NCBI GenBank assembly: GCA_965240325.2
Contig: OZ251224.1
Span: 3,286,001 to 3,350,000, forward strand
DNA length: 64,000 bases
Direction of reading: 5' to 3'
From: Rebecca billardiae RCC1528
Lineage: Eukaryota > Protista > Haptophyta
Of the stretch, positions 50,593 to 62,680 are shown in pieces. How positions within the stretch are numbered: the stretch's first letter is position 1; each line of letters starts with the position of its first letter. Below the pieces are notes generated by a model. It had not been told where the DNA came from and did no database searches. It was given only the letters and a program-made list of their open reading frames with translations. The translations under genes and the position numbers were made by a program.

Positions 50593-50775
50593 GGCGCCAG
50601 CGGCGCGCGGCCTGATGCCGGGAGGTCGCGGCCGTCGCTGGGCGAGGACTCGAAGAGCGCCTCTCGCGGCGTCTTCGATCTCGTCGCGTCGAAAATCGCG
50701 AAAATAATCTCCTCCCAGCTTTTGACTTTTCGTCTCGATGTCGTTTCATCACCTTGCCAGGCGGGGCGAACAGCC

Positions 50776-52214
50776 ATGGCGGCCGCCCAGGCTGCGTTCG
50801 TCACCCAGCCAGACCCAAGGCACGCGCATACGCGCCGCGGGCGCGCCGGCCGCCGCGTCGCGCGCGTGTCGCACGCGCACGGTCTCGCACTCACCCCGCA
50901 TCGCCGCCGCCGCGGTGCGTCCGTGCCGCCGCTCGACCACCTGCCGCCGCGCGCAGTGCGTTCCTCAACGCGACCGCCGCGCCGCCCGATGGCGTGCCAG
51001 ACGCCTCGACGACGTCGCAGTCGACGCTGCTGCTGCAGAAGAAGAAGGAGATGATGGACGTGCAACAGCAGCTCGACCGCAAGAAGGAGGAGTGCCGAAA
51101 GCGCATGCAGCGCTGCCAGATCAAGGAGGTCGAGCTGGCGACGCGTCAGGAGCAGCTCAAGGAGCGCGTCGCCAAGTTCGACAAGTTCCTGCGCGACACG
51201 GACACGAAGCGCACGCGCGCGGTGCGGCGGGAGCAGGACGAGATCAAGGTGGCCGACCAGAAGATGCTCGAGATCCGCCAGCTGCAGGAGACCTTCGTCA
51301 AGTCGACCGAGGAGCGCGACCACGTCGAGGCGACGCTCGAGCGCAACCAGGCGTACGAGCAGTTCCTCCTGCACGTGTGCGACTCGACGGAGTACTTCTC
51401 GGAGATCTCGGACATCCTGATGCGGCACGACACGCTGGTCGCGGCGAACGCCGACCTGCTCCAGCGCATCACGCAGGCGCAGGCCGAGGCCGAGGAGATG
51501 CGCGCACGCCTCTCTCTGTATGTGAAGGAGGCGCAGACCGAGTCGCTCGTGCACAACTCCGAGATCGCCGCGCAGCAGCAGGCGCTGGAGGAGTTCAAGC
51601 GGCGGGTGTCGCAGATGGAGCTGGAGCTCTCGCGCAACGAGGGCGGCGCGAAGGAGCGCTCGCGCGAGCTCGGCGAGATCAACATGGCCATCCAGAACAT
51701 CTACGTGCGGTGCGAGAAGACCAAGATGAGAGTGCCAACGGTCGACCCGCCCACGCAGCCAGAGCGGCTGGGCGCGGCCGAGGTGATGCCGCTGCTCGAC
51801 ACGATCGAGACGCGGGTCACCGACCTGCTGGCGATCCTCAAAGCGCTCAAGGAGCACAGGCGACAGGCCGCCGCCAACGCCGCCGCCAATGCCGCCGCCC
51901 CGGGCGTGCTGCCACCCGGCACAACAGGCATTCTGCGCGAGCCGGGCGCGGGCGCGAACGAGCGCGCAATGGGCGCGGGCGCAGGCGTCGGCGTCAGCTT
52001 GAATACGAGCGGCCAGTCGGGTGGGGGCGAGCGCCTACAGCGCTCGCAGCGCGGGGGTGACACGAGTGGCGGTGGTGGCACGGCGCTCAGCCGGCGGGTC
52101 AGTCTCTCGGCGTCGCGGGGTGCGACGCGCCTCATCCCCTCGGACGCGCTGGAGACGTCGCGCTCCAACGCCTCGGTGCTCTCGCGATCCAACGAAAGCC
52201 AGCGCGCGACCTAG
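50776..52214 (+). CDS. CFAP73: CFAP73/CCDC42-like (DUF4200) flagellar coiled-coil protein; GC-AG intron 50820-50956
   Basis: STLLLQKKKEM..VQQQLDRKKEE...KFDKFLRDTDTKRTRA and Y..FL..V...EYFSEISDILMRHDTL. Confidence 0.8.
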
Positions 52215-53217: not shown

Positions 53218-54189
53218 ATAGTGATGTAATTTATGAGCCCTTGCACGCCTATGTAGATATTTGCTGAATAGACTCGTCAAAAATAATGGTAGTAGTGACT
53301 GATCTGGTCGCCATTCAGCCAGGTTTGGCGTTTGCCACTGGCGACTGCACACGGCAACAGGGGCGTTTGCGCCCTGTTGTCGTGTGCACACTGGGGCGCA
53401 AAAGGGGTCACCCTCAGGGGGTTTCGCACTGCTGTTGCCGTGTGCACCGGCCCGCTGTGGCCGTGCACACGGCAACAGGGCGCAAACGGCCCTGTTGCCG
53501 TGTGCAGGCGTGCATGGCTTGCGATGGCAGCCAGCCGTCAGCAGGGCGCCACGCCCACTGTTCGTTGGTAGGCTGGCCCGATGGCGTCGCGGAGCTCACG
53601 CGTACGGGGGAGGAGGGCATCGACGAGGAGACGACCAAGGGCGAGAAGCAGCAGGGGGCACGCAGCACGGGGCTCGGAGCATGCAGCGAGCACGCGTGCC
53701 TCCATACCGTCGCACATCAACCTTGCTCGTAGCTGTGCGCTGTGCTGCCACTCATCTCACCATCGCCCATGCTACGGGCGCGGCCCGGTGGTGGGCATCT
53801 ACCTGTCGGCGCAGCACTGGCACCGGTGGTCGCCAGACACTCCTCGACTTGCTCTGCGCGTCACAGCAAGGAGACGGCAGCGGCACAGCTGCGTGAGCAC
53901 ATGAGGTCCTACTACTCTAGTAGTACTCGGCGAGGCAGTACAGGCATGGACTGCACTCCAGGTGCATGCGAGCTACTGGCATACTCCCCTACTCAGACCG
54001 CAGGACCATCAATGCGGCGCTGCTTCGGATACACGAGCGCAGCGCTGCTGGTAACAGCGGCGCTGTTGATGCTGCAGCAGCAGTACGTACAGTATAATGA
54101 CGGGCGGCAGCAGTTGCTCCAACTAACAGCTCGGTGGTGCTCGCTTGAACGGCCTGGGCAATGGCGCGCCAAACGCAGCGACCTGGCCC

Positions 54190-56520
54190 ATCGCGCCCGC
54201 CGCGATGGGGTCGCTGGCACCTGATGATGCTGCACCCGCGCCCATCCGGGCCGCCAACACCAGCGGCAGCCACGCTCGAGTCTGCACTGCATGCGGCAGC
54301 AGCTGCTGGAATGGTCCCGCGGCGGATGACGGCTTTCGCCGCAGATGACAGCTCGGTGTCGCTCGCTCGAGGGGCCTCGTCGATGGACGCGCCGAGCGCC
54401 GTGACGTTGCTCCACACGACCACGGCACTGCCCAGCGCGCTGGAGCCGCTGCCATCTGGTGCTGCTGTGCCCGCGCCCAGCTGGGGCCCAGCTGCAGCTG
54501 CACTTGACTCCGCGCCGCATTGGCTGCAGCAGCAGGGATGGTGCCACGGCGGGCGGCGTGGGTCGGCGCAGCTGTCAGCTCGGCGGTGCGCGCCCGAGGG
54601 GCCCGGGCATTGGATGCACCGAGCGCGGTGTCACTGCTCGCCTCCCGCAGCGCGCTGGAGCCGCTGCCATCCGACGCTGCTGCGCCCGCGCCCAGCTTGG
54701 GCAGCAGCGGCTGCGCTAGACTCCGCGCCGCGTGCGGCAGCAGCAGCAGGGATGGTGCCACGGTGGGCAGCGGCGGTTGCTGGAGCTGAAAACTCGGCTG
54801 TGTGCGCCCGAGGGGCCTGGGCGGTGGGCGCACCGAGCGCGGTGCCGCTGCTCGCCTCGCCCATGGCGCTCGAGCCGCTGCCATCCGACGCTGCTGCGCA
54901 CGCGCCAAGCTTGGGCAGCAGCGGCTGCGCTCGACTCCGCGCCGCGTGCGGCAGCAGCAGCAGGGATGGTGCCACGGTGGGCGGCGGCGGTCGCTGGAGC
55001 TGAAAGCTCGGCTGTGTGCGCCCGAGGGGCCTGGGCGGTGGGCGCACCGAACGCGGTGCCGCTGCTCGCCTCGCCCATGGCGCTCGAGCCGCTGCCATCC
55101 GACGCTGCTGCGCCCGCGCCAAGCTTGGGCAGCAGCGGCTGCGCTCGACTCCGCGCCGAGTGCGGCGGCAGCAGCAGGGATGATGCCACGGCGGGCGGCG
55201 TGGGTCGCTGGAGCTGAAAGCTCGGCGGTGTGCGCCCGAGGGGCGTGGGTGCTGGACGCACCGAGCGCGGTGCCGCTGCTCGCCTCGCCCATGGCGCTCG
55301 AGCCGCTGCCATCCGGTGCTGGTGCGCCCACGCCCAGCTGGGGCAGCAGCAGCAGCGGCGCTCGACTCCGCGCCGCGTGCGGCAGCAGCAGCAGGAATGG
55401 TGCCACTGTGGGCGGCGGCGGTTGCTGCAGCCGGCAGCTCGGTGGCGCACGCCCGAGGGGCCTGGGCTGCAGACGCGCTGAGCGCGCCATCGCCGCTCGC
55501 CTCCCGCAGCGCGCTGGAGCCCTGCCATCCGACGCTGCTGCGCTTGCGCCCAGCTTGGGCAGCAGCAGCTGCGCTCGACTCCGCGCCGCGTGCGGCGGCA
55601 GCAGCAGGGATGGTGCCACGGCGGGTGGCGGCGGTCGACGCAGCTGAAAGCTCGGCGGTGCACGCCCGAGGGGCCTGGGCGGTGGGCGCACCGAACGCGG
55701 TGCCGCTGCTCGCCTCCCGCAGCGCGCTGGAGCCGCTGCCATCCGATGCTGCTGCACCAGCGCCCAGCTTGGGCAGCAGCAGCCGCGCCTGACTCCGCGC
55801 CGCGTGCGGCGGCAGCAGCAGGGATGGTGCCACGGCGGGCGGCGGCGGTCGACGCAGCTGGAAGCTCGGCAGCGCACGCCCGAGGGGCCTGGGCGCTGGG
55901 CGCACCGAACGCGGTGCCGCTGCTCGCCTCGCCCATGGCGCTCGAGCCGCTGCCATCCGACGCTGCTGCGCCCGCGCCCAGCTTGGGCAGCAGCGGCTGC
56001 GCTCGACTCCGCACCGCGTGCGGCAGCAGCAGCAGGGATGGTGGCACGGCGGGCGGCGGTGGTTGCTGCAGCCGGCAGCTCGGCGGTGCACGCCCGAGGG
56101 GCCTGGGCGCTGGACGCACCGAGCGCGGTGCCGCTGCTCGCCTCGCCCATAGCGCTGGAGCCGCTGCCATCCAGTGCTGCTGCGCCCGCGCCCGGCCAGG
56201 GCAGCAGCAGCAGCGCTCCACTCCGCGCCGCGTGCGGCAGCAGCAGCAGGGATGGTGCCACGGCGGGCGGCCGCAGCAGCTGAAAGCTTGGCAGTGCCCA
56301 CCCGAGAGGCGTGGGCGCTGGACGCACCGAGCGCGGTGTAGCCGCTCGCCTCGTTCCGTAGCGCGCTCGAGCCTCTGCCATCCGATGCCGCTGCGCCCGT
56401 GCCCCGGCGCCGCTGCACGGCTGCAGCTGGCAGGCCTGGCAGCAGCTGCGCTCCGGAGGCTTCGCGCCGCATGCGGTGGTAGCAGCAGGGAGGTGCCACG
56501 GCCAAGCCGGCGGCGGTGGT
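54190..56520 (+). repeat. 214-bp tandem array, about 11 units (left arm)
   Basis: Anchor ccgctgccat at 54446, 54661, 54875, 55089, 55303, about 55519, 55733, 55947, 56161 and about 56372. Confidence 0.92.
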
Positions 56521-57339
56521 CGGGCGGTGCTGAGTGCTGCTTGGCACGCGCGCCGACCGGTCGTCGTTAAAACTATTGTATCATACGTACTCTACTACAG
56601 TACTACGGTCCCGGCGTATAAGTATAGACTGCTGACCAGCTGACCGTGACCGTGTCGCGCCGGAGTGTAGCACGGTGATGACGCCAGCAGTCGAGCTGCT
56701 ACTGCTGCTGCTCACTACTGATGCTCGTACATTGATGAGTTAGCTTCTACTAACTTACACTGTGAGCCGCCAGGCCCAGCACGACTTGTCGTCGCGACAG
56801 TCCGGCCGGACGCGGACGACGAGACCATCACATCACTGATAAGTGACTAGCTACGCGAGCAGTCAGGCTGTGACGGCGGACAGACGACAACACCGCCGCC
56901 AGGGTACCGATCCGGATAGACCGCTAGGTGGAGTAAGAGTCACTTCAGAGTATATATATACGCACATGACGGCAGAGTGTCGGACAGCCGCCGCCCCGGA
57001 GCTGGCTGATGCATCGTCGTAGTCGGAGTACCGCTCTGAACGGCTAGTCGGAGCAGATTGACGATGATTCGAGATATATGCTCGGTGCCGTAGTACGCGT
57101 GGATAATTTAAAGAGTTCTTACGTCGTACTCGTCTAGGCAGATGCTGATGTAGTGATGACGATGCATGATGCTGCTGATAACTTCTGCATCGCCTACCTG
57201 CCGGGCTACGACTGGTATGCGCCGCCGGCCTTATGAATATGAGCTGACCGGCATTGCCCGCCCCGGAACCTGCTGGCGGCTCGGCTCGCAGCAGGACAGA
57301 AGAAGTGTCGTAGCAACAGCTCCGGGGGCTGGCCAGCGC

Positions 57340-58545
57340 GCCTGACGCGTGCATCAGCGTCACTGCATTGCGCGCGTCTGCCGCCCAGGCCCCTCGCGCG
57401 TGCAGCACCGAGCTGCTAGCTGCATGCACCGCCGCCCGCCCGCCGTGGCGCCATCCCTGATGCTGCAGCCGCACTCGGCGCGACAGGGCGCGGGCGCGGC
57501 AGCATCGGATGGCAGCGGCTCGAGCGCGCCGGGCGAGGCGAGAGGCGTCAGCGCGCTCAATGCACCCACCGCCCAGGCCCCTCAGGCGCACACCGCCGAG
57601 CTTTCAGCTCTAGCGTCGTCGCCCACCGTAGCACCATCCCTGCTGCTGCCGCCCCACGCGGCGCGGAGTCGAGCGCAGCCGCTGCTGCGCAAGCTTGGCG
57701 CGGGTGCAGCAGCGTCGGATGGCAGCGGCTCCAGCGCCATGGGCGAGGCGAGCAGCGGCACCGCGTTCGGTGCGTCCAGCGCCCAGGCCCCTCGGGCGTG
57801 CACCGCCGAGCCGACAGCTCCGTCGACCGCCGCCGCCCGCCGTGGCACCATCCCTGCTGCTGCCGCCGCACTCTGCGCGGAGTCGAGCGCAGCCGCTGCT
57901 GCCCAAGCTTGGCGCGGGCGCAGCAGCGTCGGATGGCAGCGGCTCCAGCGCCATGGGCGAGGCGAGCAGCGGCACCGCGTTCGGTGCGCCCACCGCCCAG
58001 GCCCCTCAGGCGCACACCGCCGAGCTTTCAGCTCTAGCGACCGTCGTCGCCCGCCGTAGCACCATCCCTGGTGCTGCCGCCCCACGCGGCGCGGAGTCGA
58101 GCGCAGCCGCTGCTGCCCAAGCTTGGCGCGGGCGCAGCAGCGTCGGATGGCAGCGGCTCCAGCGCCATGGGCGAGGCGAGCAGCGGCACCGCGTTCGGTG
58201 CGCCCACCACCCAGGCCCCTCGGGCGTGCACCGCCGAGCCGACAGCTCCGTCGACCGCCGCCGGCCGCCGTGGCACCATCCCTGCTGCTGCCACGGCACG
58301 CGGCGCGGAGTTGAGCGCAGCTGCTGCTGCCCAAGCTGGGCGCGGGCACAGTAGTGCTCGAGGCAGCGGCTCCAGCGCGCTTGGCAGTGCCGTGGGCGCA
58401 TCGAGCAGCGTCACCACGCTCGGCGCGTCCGTCGTCCAGGCCCTTCGAACCAGTGACACCAAGCTGTCAGCCGCGGCGACCGCCGTCATCCGTGCAGGAC
58501 CATCCCAACGGCCCAGCTGCTGCTGCCGCGTGCAGCATAGAGTAG
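57340..58545 (-). repeat. 214-bp tandem array, about 5-6 units, inverted (right arm)
   Basis: Anchor gatggcagcggctc at 57508, 57718, 57932, 58146 and about 58360; reverse complement of the left-arm unit. Confidence 0.92.
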
Positions 58546-59605
58546 AGCGCCCCTCAGCCTGCCGGCAGAGTGGGGCGCAGGTGTTTGAAGCAGCACCCGG
58601 CGGTTGGTCCTGCGCTCCTGGGCACGGCTATGTACCTGTTGGTCTCATGAATGCGGGGGAATGCCAGCGCTCGCCACGCGTGCTCAGCTTCTCAGCCTCG
58701 CAAAGCAGAGGAGCACTTCATCTGCGAGCTCACACAGCTGTGCCGCTGCCGTCTCCTTGCTGTGACGCGCAGAGCAAGTCGAGGAGTGTCTGGCGACCAC
58801 CGGTGCCAGTGCTGCGCCGACAGGTAGATGCCCACCACCCGGCCGCGCCCGTAGCATGGGCGATGGTGAGATGAGTGGCAGCACAGCGCACAGCTACGAG
58901 CAAGGTTGATGTGCGACGGTGTGGAGGCACGCGTGCTCGCGGCATGCTCCGAGCCCCGTGCTGCGTGCCCCCTGCTGCTTCTCGCCCTTGGTCGTCTCCT
59001 CGTCGATGCCCTCCTCCCCCGTACGCGTGAGCTCCGCGACGCCATCGGGCCAGCCTACCAACGAACAGTGGGCGTGGCGCCCTGCTGACGGCTGGCTGCC
59101 ATCGCAAGCCATGCACGCCTGCACACGGCAACAGGGCCGTTTGCGCCCTGTTGCCGTGTGCACGGCCACAGCGGGCCGGTGCACACGGCAACAGCAGTGC
59201 GAAACCCCCTGAGGGTGACCCCTTTTGCGCCCCAGTGTGCACACGACAACAGGGCGCAAACGCCCCTGTTGCCGTGTGCAGTCGCCAGTGGCAAACGCCA
59301 GACCTTACTGCGCCATTATGATGTGGTCACCGTTCGCCGACTCTGATGAGGTACGCATCGATGAATATCATCATGGAAGTGGGCCATGCCGTCAAAGGAA
59401 TGAAACCGTTAATTATCCGTGGGCTGGGAAGTGGGAATCCACGGCTTCGTTCGCATCGACGACGATGATGATTCCATTGATTCGCTCCCGAGGGCCGAGG
59501 CCAATTTGCCCACGACTCGGTGTCACTACCGAGTACGCACGTGCACTCCCCGGGAGCGTTGCTTTACTTATGCGCACGGCTCGCACAGCTCAGCCCCCAC
59601 CGACG

Positions 59606-62600
59606 ATGCTCTTGCGCGTGGTCGTCCCACCTGGCTCGTCCCCGGGAGAAGAGCTCGAGCTCGTCCCCCACGACGGACGGCACGTGCGCGTGACCATTCC
59701 AGCAGGTCTCGCGCCCGGCCAGGTCTTCCACGCTGCACTCCCAGTCGATGGAGCGGGGGCGGGCGCCGCTGGCGCCGCCGCCTCACTGCCGCACCGTCAG
59801 GCGAGCGAGCCACGGCAGGGACCGCCGACACCACCAGCTCGTGCAGCGCTCCCTGCTCCAACGCACGCTCCCAGCGCGGATGGCAGCAGTGGTCGCGTGC
59901 GCCTGGGGACCTCGGCATGTGCGTGCCTTGCCTTCTTCTTCCTGTTCATCTCCAGCCTTTGGGTTGCGTCGATGTCTGTCCTCTTCTGGACCATGCTGAT
60001 TCTGGGCGGCGTGTCTGCCTTCTGCTTCTTCGCCTGCCTTCGCTCTGGGTACGTGGACGGCGACAGTGCTGAGCGTGCGACCGCGGGCGCCGAGTCGGGC
60101 GACTCGGCGACGCTCGCGCTCGGCATTGTGAACAAGCGTGGTCGCCGTTCGATCCGCGCCGCCCGGTGGCGCCGTCGCGTCGTCGCGGCATTCTGTGCGG
60201 TGCTGCTGGTGGTGATTGGCCTTGCACTGCTCGGCGCTGGGTACTTCACGAGGGTATGGCTCATTGTTGCCCACGCAGCATATTGTGCGCCGCTGCTTGT
60301 CGGTGTGCTCCTGGCCTCGCTCTGGCGCCCTCTTGCGGTTCTCGAGCGCGGTCACCTCCAGCAGCCTGCAGGCATCTCCGGGGACTCGGCTGCAGCTTGG
60401 CGCGCGCGAATGAGCAGCAGCACTACCACTACCACCAGCATCAGCCTCCGCGACCGCAACATCGTCGATGCCGGCGTCGGCTCTCGTGGTGGAGATGCAG
60501 CAGCTGCTACTCGCGCGAGCGATGCCGAGGCACCGCCACCCGCGGGATGGTTACCGCTGCATGTGCATCCTGCAAATCGCGCCGCCAACACGGCACCAGC
60601 GGCGCGCAAGCCTCACCGCGCTTCTTCACTGCAGCCGTACCGTGGGGGGCATGCGGTTGCAAAGTACGTGGTCGTCTCGACAGAGGTGGCACTCGGCGCG
60701 CTCGGCGCGCTGGACACAGCGACGGACGAGGGGAGTGCGCTCGACATGGGTGCGTTGGAGAAGCGCGCCAAGCGCGGCGTCGTACGCATGTTGCTGCCCA
60801 AGGGCGACGCCTTTGCCATGCTGAGCTACACAAGCGCGCTCAAACGCTCGCGCAACGGGCGAGCGATGCTGCGCGGTGCTCTCGAGCACATGCGCGCGCG
60901 TGGGTTCGATTTGGTGTGGTGGGACTGGCTGATTGTAGACGAGGGCGAAGGGCGGCCGTACGTGCAGGCTGAGTTTGAGAGCGCCATGCAGTGGGCGGCG
61001 GAGTACGCCGCGCGCGTCTTCGTCGCCTGGCCCACGTCGGCGGGCGCGCGATACTACCTCAGCCGGCCGTGGTGCGTCGCGGAGCTCGCCGCAGCCGTGC
61101 GCCGCGATGCTCACGAGGTCCTTCTGTGGGAGGAGCCCGGCGCCTACGCCTCCGGAGGCCGGGTTGGCGGGCGCACCTTCTTTGGCGGGTTGGCGTGCGC
61201 CATGCTCGTTGGCTTCGTCTACGTGTCCCTTGTGGCAAGTGCCTTTCTGGATGCGCGCGGCCCGCCCACGTACGATGTGGCCAGCCGACGCACTGCGCTG
61301 TCAGACGAGCACAGGAATGAGCGTGCGTTGCGCGTATGGCTCGGAAGCTGGATTGCCTACCAGATCGCCTGCTTCGTCATCTTCGTCGGAGCGATGGGCG
61401 TGGTGCGCGCGCTCCGCGCCGACGGCGACTTTGCTCTCTACGCTGAGGAGTACCCAATGGATATGCTCCTCCTGCTGCAGCACATGACCGCTGGCGCTCA
61501 CCGCGTGCCGCCCCACAGCTCGCCCGAGGCATCCGGCGCGGCGGTGCGCGGCGGTGCTCCTGGCGGTGCGGCCGTGCCAAGCTCAGTGGCGCGCGGCAAT
61601 GGTACCGTGCCAGGTGCTGCAGCCGCTGCGCCGAGCTCGCAGGGCGAGGTGACGGCGCGGCACCTGCGGCGCTTCGGCCACCTGCGTGGTTCAATGTTTG
61701 ACGTCGGAGATGCTCCTACGTGTGCCAAGGTGCTCGGCATCCGAGCAGCTGCGCCGTTCACCTTTGACCAATGCCTGCTCGCGTACACGCGCGCAGCGCT
61801 CAGCGCCGGCCTGACGGCAAATGGTGTGGCGGACGCGCTCGCGTTGAGGCTGGGGTCGATGACGAGCATACCACACCGTTCGATCGACGATTTCGGCAGC
61901 GCGCGCTGGCTGCGTGGCTGGGACGCGGCCGGACCGGTCGGTGGGGCGCGCGCAGAGGCGGCCGCCGCAGCTGCCGCCTCGTCTGTCGCAGCGCTCTCAC
62001 CCGACTACGTGGCGCCGCTCAGCCTATGCCTCTCGTCGCGCGCTGGCGATGGCGTCGTGCTTCGCCGCGTGCTCTGCTCAGGCCCCACGCTCCGGCGCTG
62101 GCTCGTCTTATACGCGTGCGCGATGCTGCTGGTCGCGGCCATGCCCTTGGTCGGCTTCGTCAGCGACGTGCTGGTCGTGCCTGGCCGGTGGTTGCGCGCT
62201 GCGCTTGCTCTGCGGTGGTTTGGGGGAAGCTTCGCTGTGTACCTGCTGCTCACGGCGCCGCCACTCGGAGCGGTGTTGCGGGGCACGCTCACCTTCACTG
62301 GTACCTCGCCGTCGCTGATGCAGCACGAACTTCTGACAGTGCTCGCTGTTCAAGCCTGCACGCAAGCGCTCATCCTGACTGCGCTCATCGGCTGGTTCGC
62401 AGCGTACATCCGTGCTCGGCTTGCCTTCCCCCTCATGATCGCAGCGGTCGTGGTACCAAGCACTGGCGTTGTCATTGGCGTTGTCGTTGTCGTGGTCTCG
62501 GTGCTCTCGAGCACACGGCGGCCAGGCAGCGCAGCGGCGGCAGTGCCGTTTGGCCACCATGGCTGGCTTGGCACTGCGTATGACACACCCATCCGCCTGG

Positions 62601-62680
62601 TGACAAACGTCTGGCTCTGGCTATTCTTCCCTGTGAGTGCAGCGCTCCTACGCTGTGTCCATTCGCGCCGTGTGCTCTAA
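59606..62680 (+). CDS. Multi-pass membrane protein with an internal TIR/HET-like domain
   Basis: Single long ORF with many hydrophobic helices; soluble segment DAFAMLSYT...RARGFDLVWWDWL...AARVFVAW...YLSRPWCVAELAAA. Confidence 0.7.
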   Translation: MLLRVVVPPGSSPGEELELVPHDGRHVRVTIPAGLAPGQVFHAALPVDGAGAGAAGAAASLPHRQASEPRQGPPTPPARAALPAPTHAPSADGSSGRVRLGTSACACLAFFFLFISSLWVASMSVLFWTMLILGGVSAFCFFACLRSGYVDGDSAERATAGAESGDSATLALGIVNKRGRRSIRAARWRRRVVAAFCAVLLVVIGLALLGAGYFTRVWLIVAHAAYCAPLLVGVLLASLWRPLAVLERGHLQQPAGISGDSAAAWRARMSSSTTTTTSISLRDRNIVDAGVGSRGGDAAAATRASDAEAPPPAGWLPLHVHPANRAANTAPAARKPHRASSLQPYRGGHAVAKYVVVSTEVALGALGALDTATDEGSALDMGALEKRAKRGVVRMLLPKGDAFAMLSYTSALKRSRNGRAMLRGALEHMRARGFDLVWWDWLIVDEGEGRPYVQAEFESAMQWAAEYAARVFVAWPTSAGARYYLSRPWCVAELAAAVRRDAHEVLLWEEPGAYASGGRVGGRTFFGGLACAMLVGFVYVSLVASAFLDARGPPTYDVASRRTALSDEHRNERALRVWLGSWIAYQIACFVIFVGAMGVVRALRADGDFALYAEEYPMDMLLLLQHMTAGAHRVPPHSSPEASGAAVRGGAPGGAAVPSSVARGNGTVPGAAAAAPSSQGEVTARHLRRFGHLRGSMFDVGDAPTCAKVLGIRAAAPFTFDQCLLAYTRAALSAGLTANGVADALALRLGSMTSIPHRSIDDFGSARWLRGWDAAGPVGGARAEAAAAAAASSVAALSPDYVAPLSLCLSSRAGDGVVLRRVLCSGPTLRRWLVLYACAMLLVAAMPLVGFVSDVLVVPGRWLRAALALRWFGGSFAVYLLLTAPPLGAVLRGTLTFTGTSPSLMQHELLTVLAVQACTQALILTALIGWFAAYIRARLAFPLMIAAVVVPSTGVVIGVVVVVVSVLSSTRRPGSAAAAVPFGHHGWLGTAYDTPIRLVTNVWLWLFFPVSAALLRCVHSRRVL

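Follow-up and report, generated by a model that had tools for sequence, protein, structure and literature searches.

A probable young foldback-type DNA transposon family with 214-bp satellite arrays in both arms in the haptophyte alga Rebecca billardiae

Architecture of the element

The window analysed here is a stretch of 64,000 nucleotides from the GC-rich haptophyte alga Rebecca billardiae RCC1528, corresponding to positions 3286001-3350000 of contig C5 in a 72-Mb assembly of 41 contigs. It harbors a complete element of 5,995 bp (window positions 53316-59310), delimited by long terminal inverted repeats (TIRs) and carrying, in each arm, a tandem array of a 214-bp satellite unit. Its structure, its copies elsewhere in the genome and its lack of a coding gene indicate that this element is very probably one copy of a young, non-autonomous family of cut-and-paste DNA transposons of the foldback type, to which we refer as family 1. 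The features of the window copy are the following, in window coordinates:

53309-53315, no strand: left target-site duplication CGCCATT, identical to 59311-59317
53316-53898, plus strand: TIR of end A, outermost 15 nt CAGCCAGGTTTGGCG, from the inverted-repeat search
53346-53388 and 53463-53506: subterminal palindromes of end A, with a single motif at 53432-53447
53899-54069, plus strand: spacer A, unique sequence, 98.8-100% conserved between copies
54070-54448, plus strand: two diverged outer 214-bp units of arm A, 69-77% identical to an inner unit
54449-56373, plus strand: array A, nine full 214-bp units, from Tandem Repeats Finder and the unit map
56374-56517, plus strand: degenerate innermost unit of arm A, from the unit map
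56518-57354, no strand: non-coding core (middle domain) of 837 bp, from its GC content and lack of Pfam matches
57355-57515, minus strand: degenerate innermost unit of arm B, from the unit map
57516-58367, minus strand: array B, four full 214-bp units, inverted with respect to array A
58368-58550, minus strand: diverged outer unit of arm B, mirroring the outer unit of arm A, from the unit map
58551-58727, minus strand: spacer B
58728-59310, minus strand: TIR of end B, outermost 15 nt CAGTAAGGTCTGGCG, from the inverted-repeat search
59311-59317, no strand: right target-site duplication CGCCATT, read from both ends

The inverted-repeat search paired the two 583-nt TIRs with 99% complementarity, and the perfectly matching 7-bp duplication abuts both termini. 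Tandem Repeats Finder detected the two 214-bp arrays, inverted to each other, at 54430-56404 (9.2 copies, 87% matches) and 57487-58378 (4.2 copies), and the inverted-repeat search aligned them as mutual reverse complements at 88-91% in several registers. The succession of duplication, TIR, array, core, inverted array, TIR and duplication put forward by a sequence-only reading of the window is correct in all essentials, and its counts of about 11 and about 5-6 units hold if diverged units are included besides the nine and four full ones. Taken together, the arms (53316-56517 and 57355-59310) account for 86% of the 5,995-bp element and both contain tandem 214-bp repeats, as is characteristic of the foldback class. 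The arrays have a GC content of approximately 75%, versus 55-60% in the core.

The same reading had noted that the diverged outermost units mirror each other, and the unit-by-unit map bears this out. The outermost units (54323-54453 and 58362-58492) show 85% complementarity between the arms, against an identity of only 70-77% between each of them and an inner unit, and are hence positional counterparts.

The two 15-nt tips are not identical, and the polarity that they confer on the element is constant in every copy. Each end carries three instances of a 16-mer subterminal motif that is found only in family 1, and the subterminal palindromes of end A fold as DNA with z-scores of -4.4 and -5.4. 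Repeated palindromic motifs of this kind are present within 200 nt of each end, and none is found in the arrays. On one point the sequence-only reading needs correction: the spacers separating TIRs and arrays (53899-54069 and 58551-58727) are only weakly alike, so that the 99% identity between the arms breaks off sharply where the 583-bp TIR gives way to the spacer, to rise again in the arrays. This suggests either that the terminal 583 bp of one end were copied onto the other in the founder of the family, or that strong constraint acts on the TIR alone.

No Pfam match was obtained for the open reading frames (ORFs) in the core or arrays of the window copy, and no Rfam family or tRNA was detected in the element. 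The element is intergenic. On its left lies a gene encoding a DUF4200 coiled-coil protein (50754-52214, plus strand), and on its right a long ORF without Pfam match (59606-62680, plus strand), to the 5' side of which the element is close.

Copy number, mobility and age

A genome search with a 35-nt terminal probe returned exactly 34 perfect matches, which fall into 17 inverted pairs spaced by 5.6-7.3 kb and spread over 11 contigs. The subterminal 16-mer occurs 102 times in the genome, six times per copy and nowhere else. The 17 copies lie at unrelated sites and have unique flanks. All seven copies read at both ends display perfect 7-bp duplications, every one of them different (CGCCATT, GTCTGAG, GCTGGCC, GGATCGA, GCCATGC, GACCTCA and CGCACGG). 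Besides the window copy, the full sequence of one copy and the nearly full sequence of five others were assembled from pieces. That 17 copies share identical termini while occupying unrelated sites, and that all seven of those read have differing 7-bp duplications, substantiates the earlier proposal that the element is mobile: it is a real and recently active transposable element.

Comparison of the unique sequence at end A (1,133 bp) across 13 copies yielded a mean of 8.7 substitutions (0.77%) and a maximum of 21, and no substitutions at all were observed over these 1,133 bp between the window copy and the copies on contigs C15 and C12. The genome also contains older relatives, with TIRs 90-93% identical. 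In all the copies compared, TIR A and TIR B are distinguished by the same five differences, each pair scoring 99.135%; these differences were hence already present in the founder. Across copies, flanking DNA has a GC content of 58% within 100 bp of the element versus 68% further out, and no clear consensus was apparent among the target sequences.

Turnover of the satellite arrays

A single architecture is common to the window copy and the six reassembled copies. To the extent that this architecture recurs in every copy examined, the arrays are part of the arms, as had been suggested from the window alone. The copies have the following numbers of full units:

window copy: 9 in arm A, 4 in arm B
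C15 copy: 9 in arm A, 5 in arm B
C11 copy: 9 in arm A, 6 in arm B
C18 and C17b copies: 10 in arm A, 6 in arm B
C17a copy: 10 in arm A, 7 in arm B
C30 copy: 11 in arm A, 8 in arm B

The number of units has thus changed independently in the two arms, another point that the window copy had led us to expect. When the units of the other copies are assigned to those that they match best in the window copy, used as reference, units at the edges of the arrays prove 99-100% conserved, and it is interior units that have been duplicated or lost; the C30 copy contains a run of five units of the A03 type, and the C17a copy alternating dimers of the B12 and B11 types. Given that copies differ by whole units and that substitutions are almost absent, the arrays turn over faster than bases change. 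The copies on C18, C17b and C7 have the same total size (6,609 bp), and those on C18 and C17b yield identical maps, which suggests that the state of an array can also be inherited through transposition. The cores are homologous between copies and differ mainly by short indels of the (TA)n type. As in other foldback elements, the middle domain is non-coding and varies between copies and subfamilies.

Sister families and genome-wide distribution of the satellite

A search for a 22-mer of the unit, allowing up to three mismatches, identified 854 matches in the genome, of which 437 are in forward and 417 in reverse orientation, amounting to approximately 0.25% of the genome. These numbers show that the element disperses the satellite. 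The 214-bp unit is associated with the TIRs in every copy examined; a few arrays, such as those at C18:2095241-2096951 and L038, lack TIR and spacer sequence of families 1 and 2 within approximately 1 kb. Among the matches listed there is no long free-standing 214-bp satellite, the longest arrays listed spanning approximately 3 kb. Exact-pattern scans of metagenome contigs for the unit 22-mer and for the family terminus returned no match.

The 15-nt terminus of end A was detected at ten further places, eight of which belong to a sister family (family 2) with elements of 6.7-9.8 kb (e.g. C16:1182845-1190638, C15:1896058-1905847 and L054:6145-9440). The TIRs of the two families are approximately 70% identical in their inner half and have the outermost 15 nt in common. 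Their subterminal palindromes occupy corresponding positions and differ in sequence, family 1 having a GCAACAGGG-like repeated motif and family 2 a GCAAACTGGG-like one. As DNA, the subterminal regions of either family form much more stable folds than shuffled controls (z-scores of -4.1 to -7.5). Family 2 also carries the 214-bp satellite in both arms, with units 86-89% identical to those of family 1 and 96% homogeneous within an array; one copy, read in one arm, has 8.6 units, and another has 12.7 and 11.7. No Pfam match was found in the 2.9-kb center of the longest family-2 copy (L055). One further match to the 15-nt terminus, on C13, adjoins an ORF for a reverse transcriptase (PF00078, approximately 2783774-2785495, minus strand), and probably arose by chance.

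Two more matches to the 15-nt terminus are family-2 ends that have been interrupted by insertions, one of 6.6 kb and one of 4.6 kb. The larger insertion (C16:635661-641805) lies within a TIR, 21 nt from its tip, and consists of 26-bp and 409-bp tandem repeats together with long GC-rich ORFs; it gave no Pfam match.

A third family comprises at least seven copies, represented by the element at C19:1172000-1177000 and by six or more loci of equal spacing. Its arms, of 1,242 nt, are 98% alike and contain three to four diverged 214-bp units, and they are accompanied by a different, outer and AT-richer repeat of approximately 200 bp that extends beyond the 5 kb read. The satellite hence occupies the same position in the arms of three families, which implies that it is older than their split.

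Superfamily and candidate transposases

The 7-bp duplication observed in all seven copies is consistent with the 7-8 bp duplications of the P superfamily, and on these grounds the element is tentatively assigned to that superfamily, as a Galileo-like member, with a likelihood that we place close to, and slightly under, an even balance. A genome search for the RNase H domain of P-element and THAP9 transposases (PF21787) produced a single match (E 1.9e-7), located in an unlinked, uninterrupted ORF of 1317 aa on C21 (approximately 1532845-1536795, minus strand). The C-terminal half of its product resembles THAP9/P transposase clusters, with protein atlas scores of 0.94-0.95, and it contains motifs that we take to be those of the THAP9/P transposase family; the N-terminal extension, of approximately 800 aa, has no Pfam match. 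Among the genes considered, the C21 ORF is the leading candidate for the protein that mobilizes the family, a role that it might conceivably play but that we consider doubtful.

Several observations weigh against this assignment and against the C21 gene. No examined copy of families 1-3 encodes a transposase, P-type or otherwise, and the same applies to a relative on C15 (L041) in which the core is replaced by 3.9 kb containing no recognizable protein. Neither inverted repeats nor family termini were found around the C21 ORF, in which only one Pfam domain was detected, with the E-value given above, and which had no relatives in a PDB sequence search or in a word-based protein search. Furthermore, the arrays have no word of 9 nt or longer in common with the terminal 200 nt, a lower number than shuffled controls gave, and the Galileo-derived idea that the repeats supply extra binding sites therefore lacks sequence support in this family. 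Lastly, duplications of 7 bp point to the P superfamily without being diagnostic of it.

The best-placed alternative, which we rate as appreciably probable without reaching the standing of the P assignment, is that the family belongs to the hAT superfamily or to one missed by the Pfam models used, or that its autonomous partner is absent from the assembly. The CAG terminus and the repeated subterminal motifs are presumably also compatible with hAT-like ends. No linked transposase was found in the genome, and the autonomous partners of the Drosophila elements Tetris and DAIBAM were likewise never found (PMC4079207). Copies that are identical over 1.1 kb nevertheless imply a transposase active until very recently, which would be expected to be present in an assembly of 41 contigs. 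hAT duplications are typically of 8 bp. Those of this family are of 7 bp, and the sole match to the hAT dimerization domain in the genome lies in a remnant interrupted by an internal stop codon. A search of the genome for KDZ transposases gave no match, but neither did its control.

It is considerably less probable that these are Mutator-superfamily foldback elements, akin to FB, Tetris and Phantom and moved by a transposase of the Mutator-like element (MULE) type, even though the literature places most foldback elements in that superfamily (PMC4079207). MULE searches identified two matches in the genome, the better of which is an intact-looking ORF of 1037 aa (PF10551) on C23. This ORF resides in a 3.8-kb element with 124-bp TIRs, the termini of which are unrelated to the 15-nt terminus of our family, and the 7-bp duplications of all seven copies depart from the 8-10 bp reported for Tetris (PMC4079207). 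The C23 element itself (approximately 326265-330030, TIRs 99% alike) is apparently autonomous, and its insertion site lies within another GC-rich tandem array, which is based on a CCGCAGSCCTGCGG motif.

Proposed mechanism and origin of the arrays

As a non-autonomous foldback-type transposon, the element would depend on a transposase supplied in trans, which would recognize the outermost 15 nt and the pairs of subterminal palindromic motifs in the first 200 nt of each end. Excision would be followed by reinsertion with a 7-bp staggered cut, mildly favoring lower-GC intergenic DNA. The 214-bp arrays, inherited in both arms, travel with the element whenever it jumps. Interior units of the arrays are gained and lost much faster than bases are substituted, probably by unequal exchange or by slippage during repair of the excision gap.

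A bolder extension of this scheme, to which we attach a low probability, holds that the 214-bp array is a necessary cis-acting structural module, and that one stationary P/THAP9-like gene, lacking ends of its own, drives the entire group. It is motivated by the array having been kept in both arms through at least three families while the subterminal palindromes were replaced. If this is correct, selection acting on a transposon would here maintain satellite DNA, in a protist lineage from which no foldback element has been described.

The arrays could also have come first, with transposon ends inserting into, or capturing, an independent 214-bp satellite. The arrays found without a family-1 or family-2 TIR or spacer within approximately 1 kb are in agreement with such an origin, which is nonetheless very improbable: the arrays have the same position within both arms in every examined copy of three families, their edge units are position-specific, 99-100% conserved and mirrored between arms, and genome-wide the unit is balanced between strands (437 versus 417), with no long free array among the matches listed. 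Finally, chimeric reads can generate large inverted repeats, but the doubt that the palindrome might be an assembly artefact born of long-read errors is answered, and for practical purposes eliminated, by the 17 copies, which occupy 11 contigs, have unique flanks and, in all seven read at both ends, carry matching duplications that differ from site to site; three of the copies share a size of 6,609 bp, and two of these three (C18 and C17b) map identically.

Comparison with known foldback elements

Foldback (FB) elements of Drosophila are hairpin-shaped, with long, internally repetitive inverted arms and a variable center, and the family described here resembles them in these respects. The arms of FB are repetitive almost to the tip, whereas in this family a unique TIR of 583 bp, followed by a spacer, separates the arrays from the tip. 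The sequence-only reading had likened the element to FB and Galileo, a parallel that is apt (PMC3573991, PMC3688188). Galileo has been described to produce 7-bp duplications and to contain tandem repeats of approximately 210 bp in its TIRs, with independent dynamics in the two arms (PMC3573991), and the terminal 40 bp or so are common to its families, with long TIRs that are otherwise family-specific (PMC3688188). Judging by the described features, the two systems agree in the length of the duplication, in TIRs of up to 1.2 kb with repeats of approximately 210 bp that differ in number between arms, in the abundance of copies consisting of two TIRs without a gene, and in a short shared terminus followed by family-specific TIR sequence. 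They differ in that nearly complete Galileo copies encode a P-type transposase and none is encoded in these families, in the number of repeats per arm (0-4 in Galileo, 4-13 units here), in the THAP binding sites carried by Galileo repeats (cf. PMC3688188), as opposed to arrays that share no motif with the termini, and in the host, an insect in one case and a haptophyte alga in the other.

Tetris and DAIBAM, from Drosophila virilis, also combine an outer unique domain, repeats of approximately 220 bp and an inner domain in their arms with a variable non-coding middle, have no autonomous copy, and have their repeat present outside complete elements as well (PMC4079207). Tetris, in contrast, generates duplications of 8-10 bp, has been assigned to Mutator, is known from three complete copies and has given rise to a real satellite; the family reported here is defined by 7-bp duplications and 17 near-identical complete copies, with no large free satellite among the matches listed.

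What distinguishes these families from Galileo, Foldback and Tetris is the host lineage, the size of the arrays, which reach approximately 13 units per arm, the retention of one satellite by three families with differing subterminal motifs, and the lack of an autonomous copy despite copies that are identical over 1.1 kb. A literature search returned nothing combining foldback elements and haptophytes, which is an absence of matches and not proof of novelty, and a survey of haptophyte transposable elements makes no mention of such elements. The foldback-plus-satellite design, so far reported mainly from Drosophila, is hence also present, and currently active, in a haptophyte alga. Near-identical copies with diverged arrays, 17 in number, could be used to gauge the rate of repeat change relative to point mutation, and the same data set could reveal whether the repeats serve the transposon. 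Such copies provide material for inversions through ectopic recombination and act as a source of dispersed satellite; they also sit near genes, and are for these reasons relevant to the annotation of this genome and to its stability.

Reading frames in the arrays

On the minus strand of array A (54123-56547), long stop-free stretches run through three frames and yield ORFs of 752, 638 and 501 aa. These open frames are best explained by the 75% GC content of the array in combination with its 214-bp (3n+1) period, and not by coding function.

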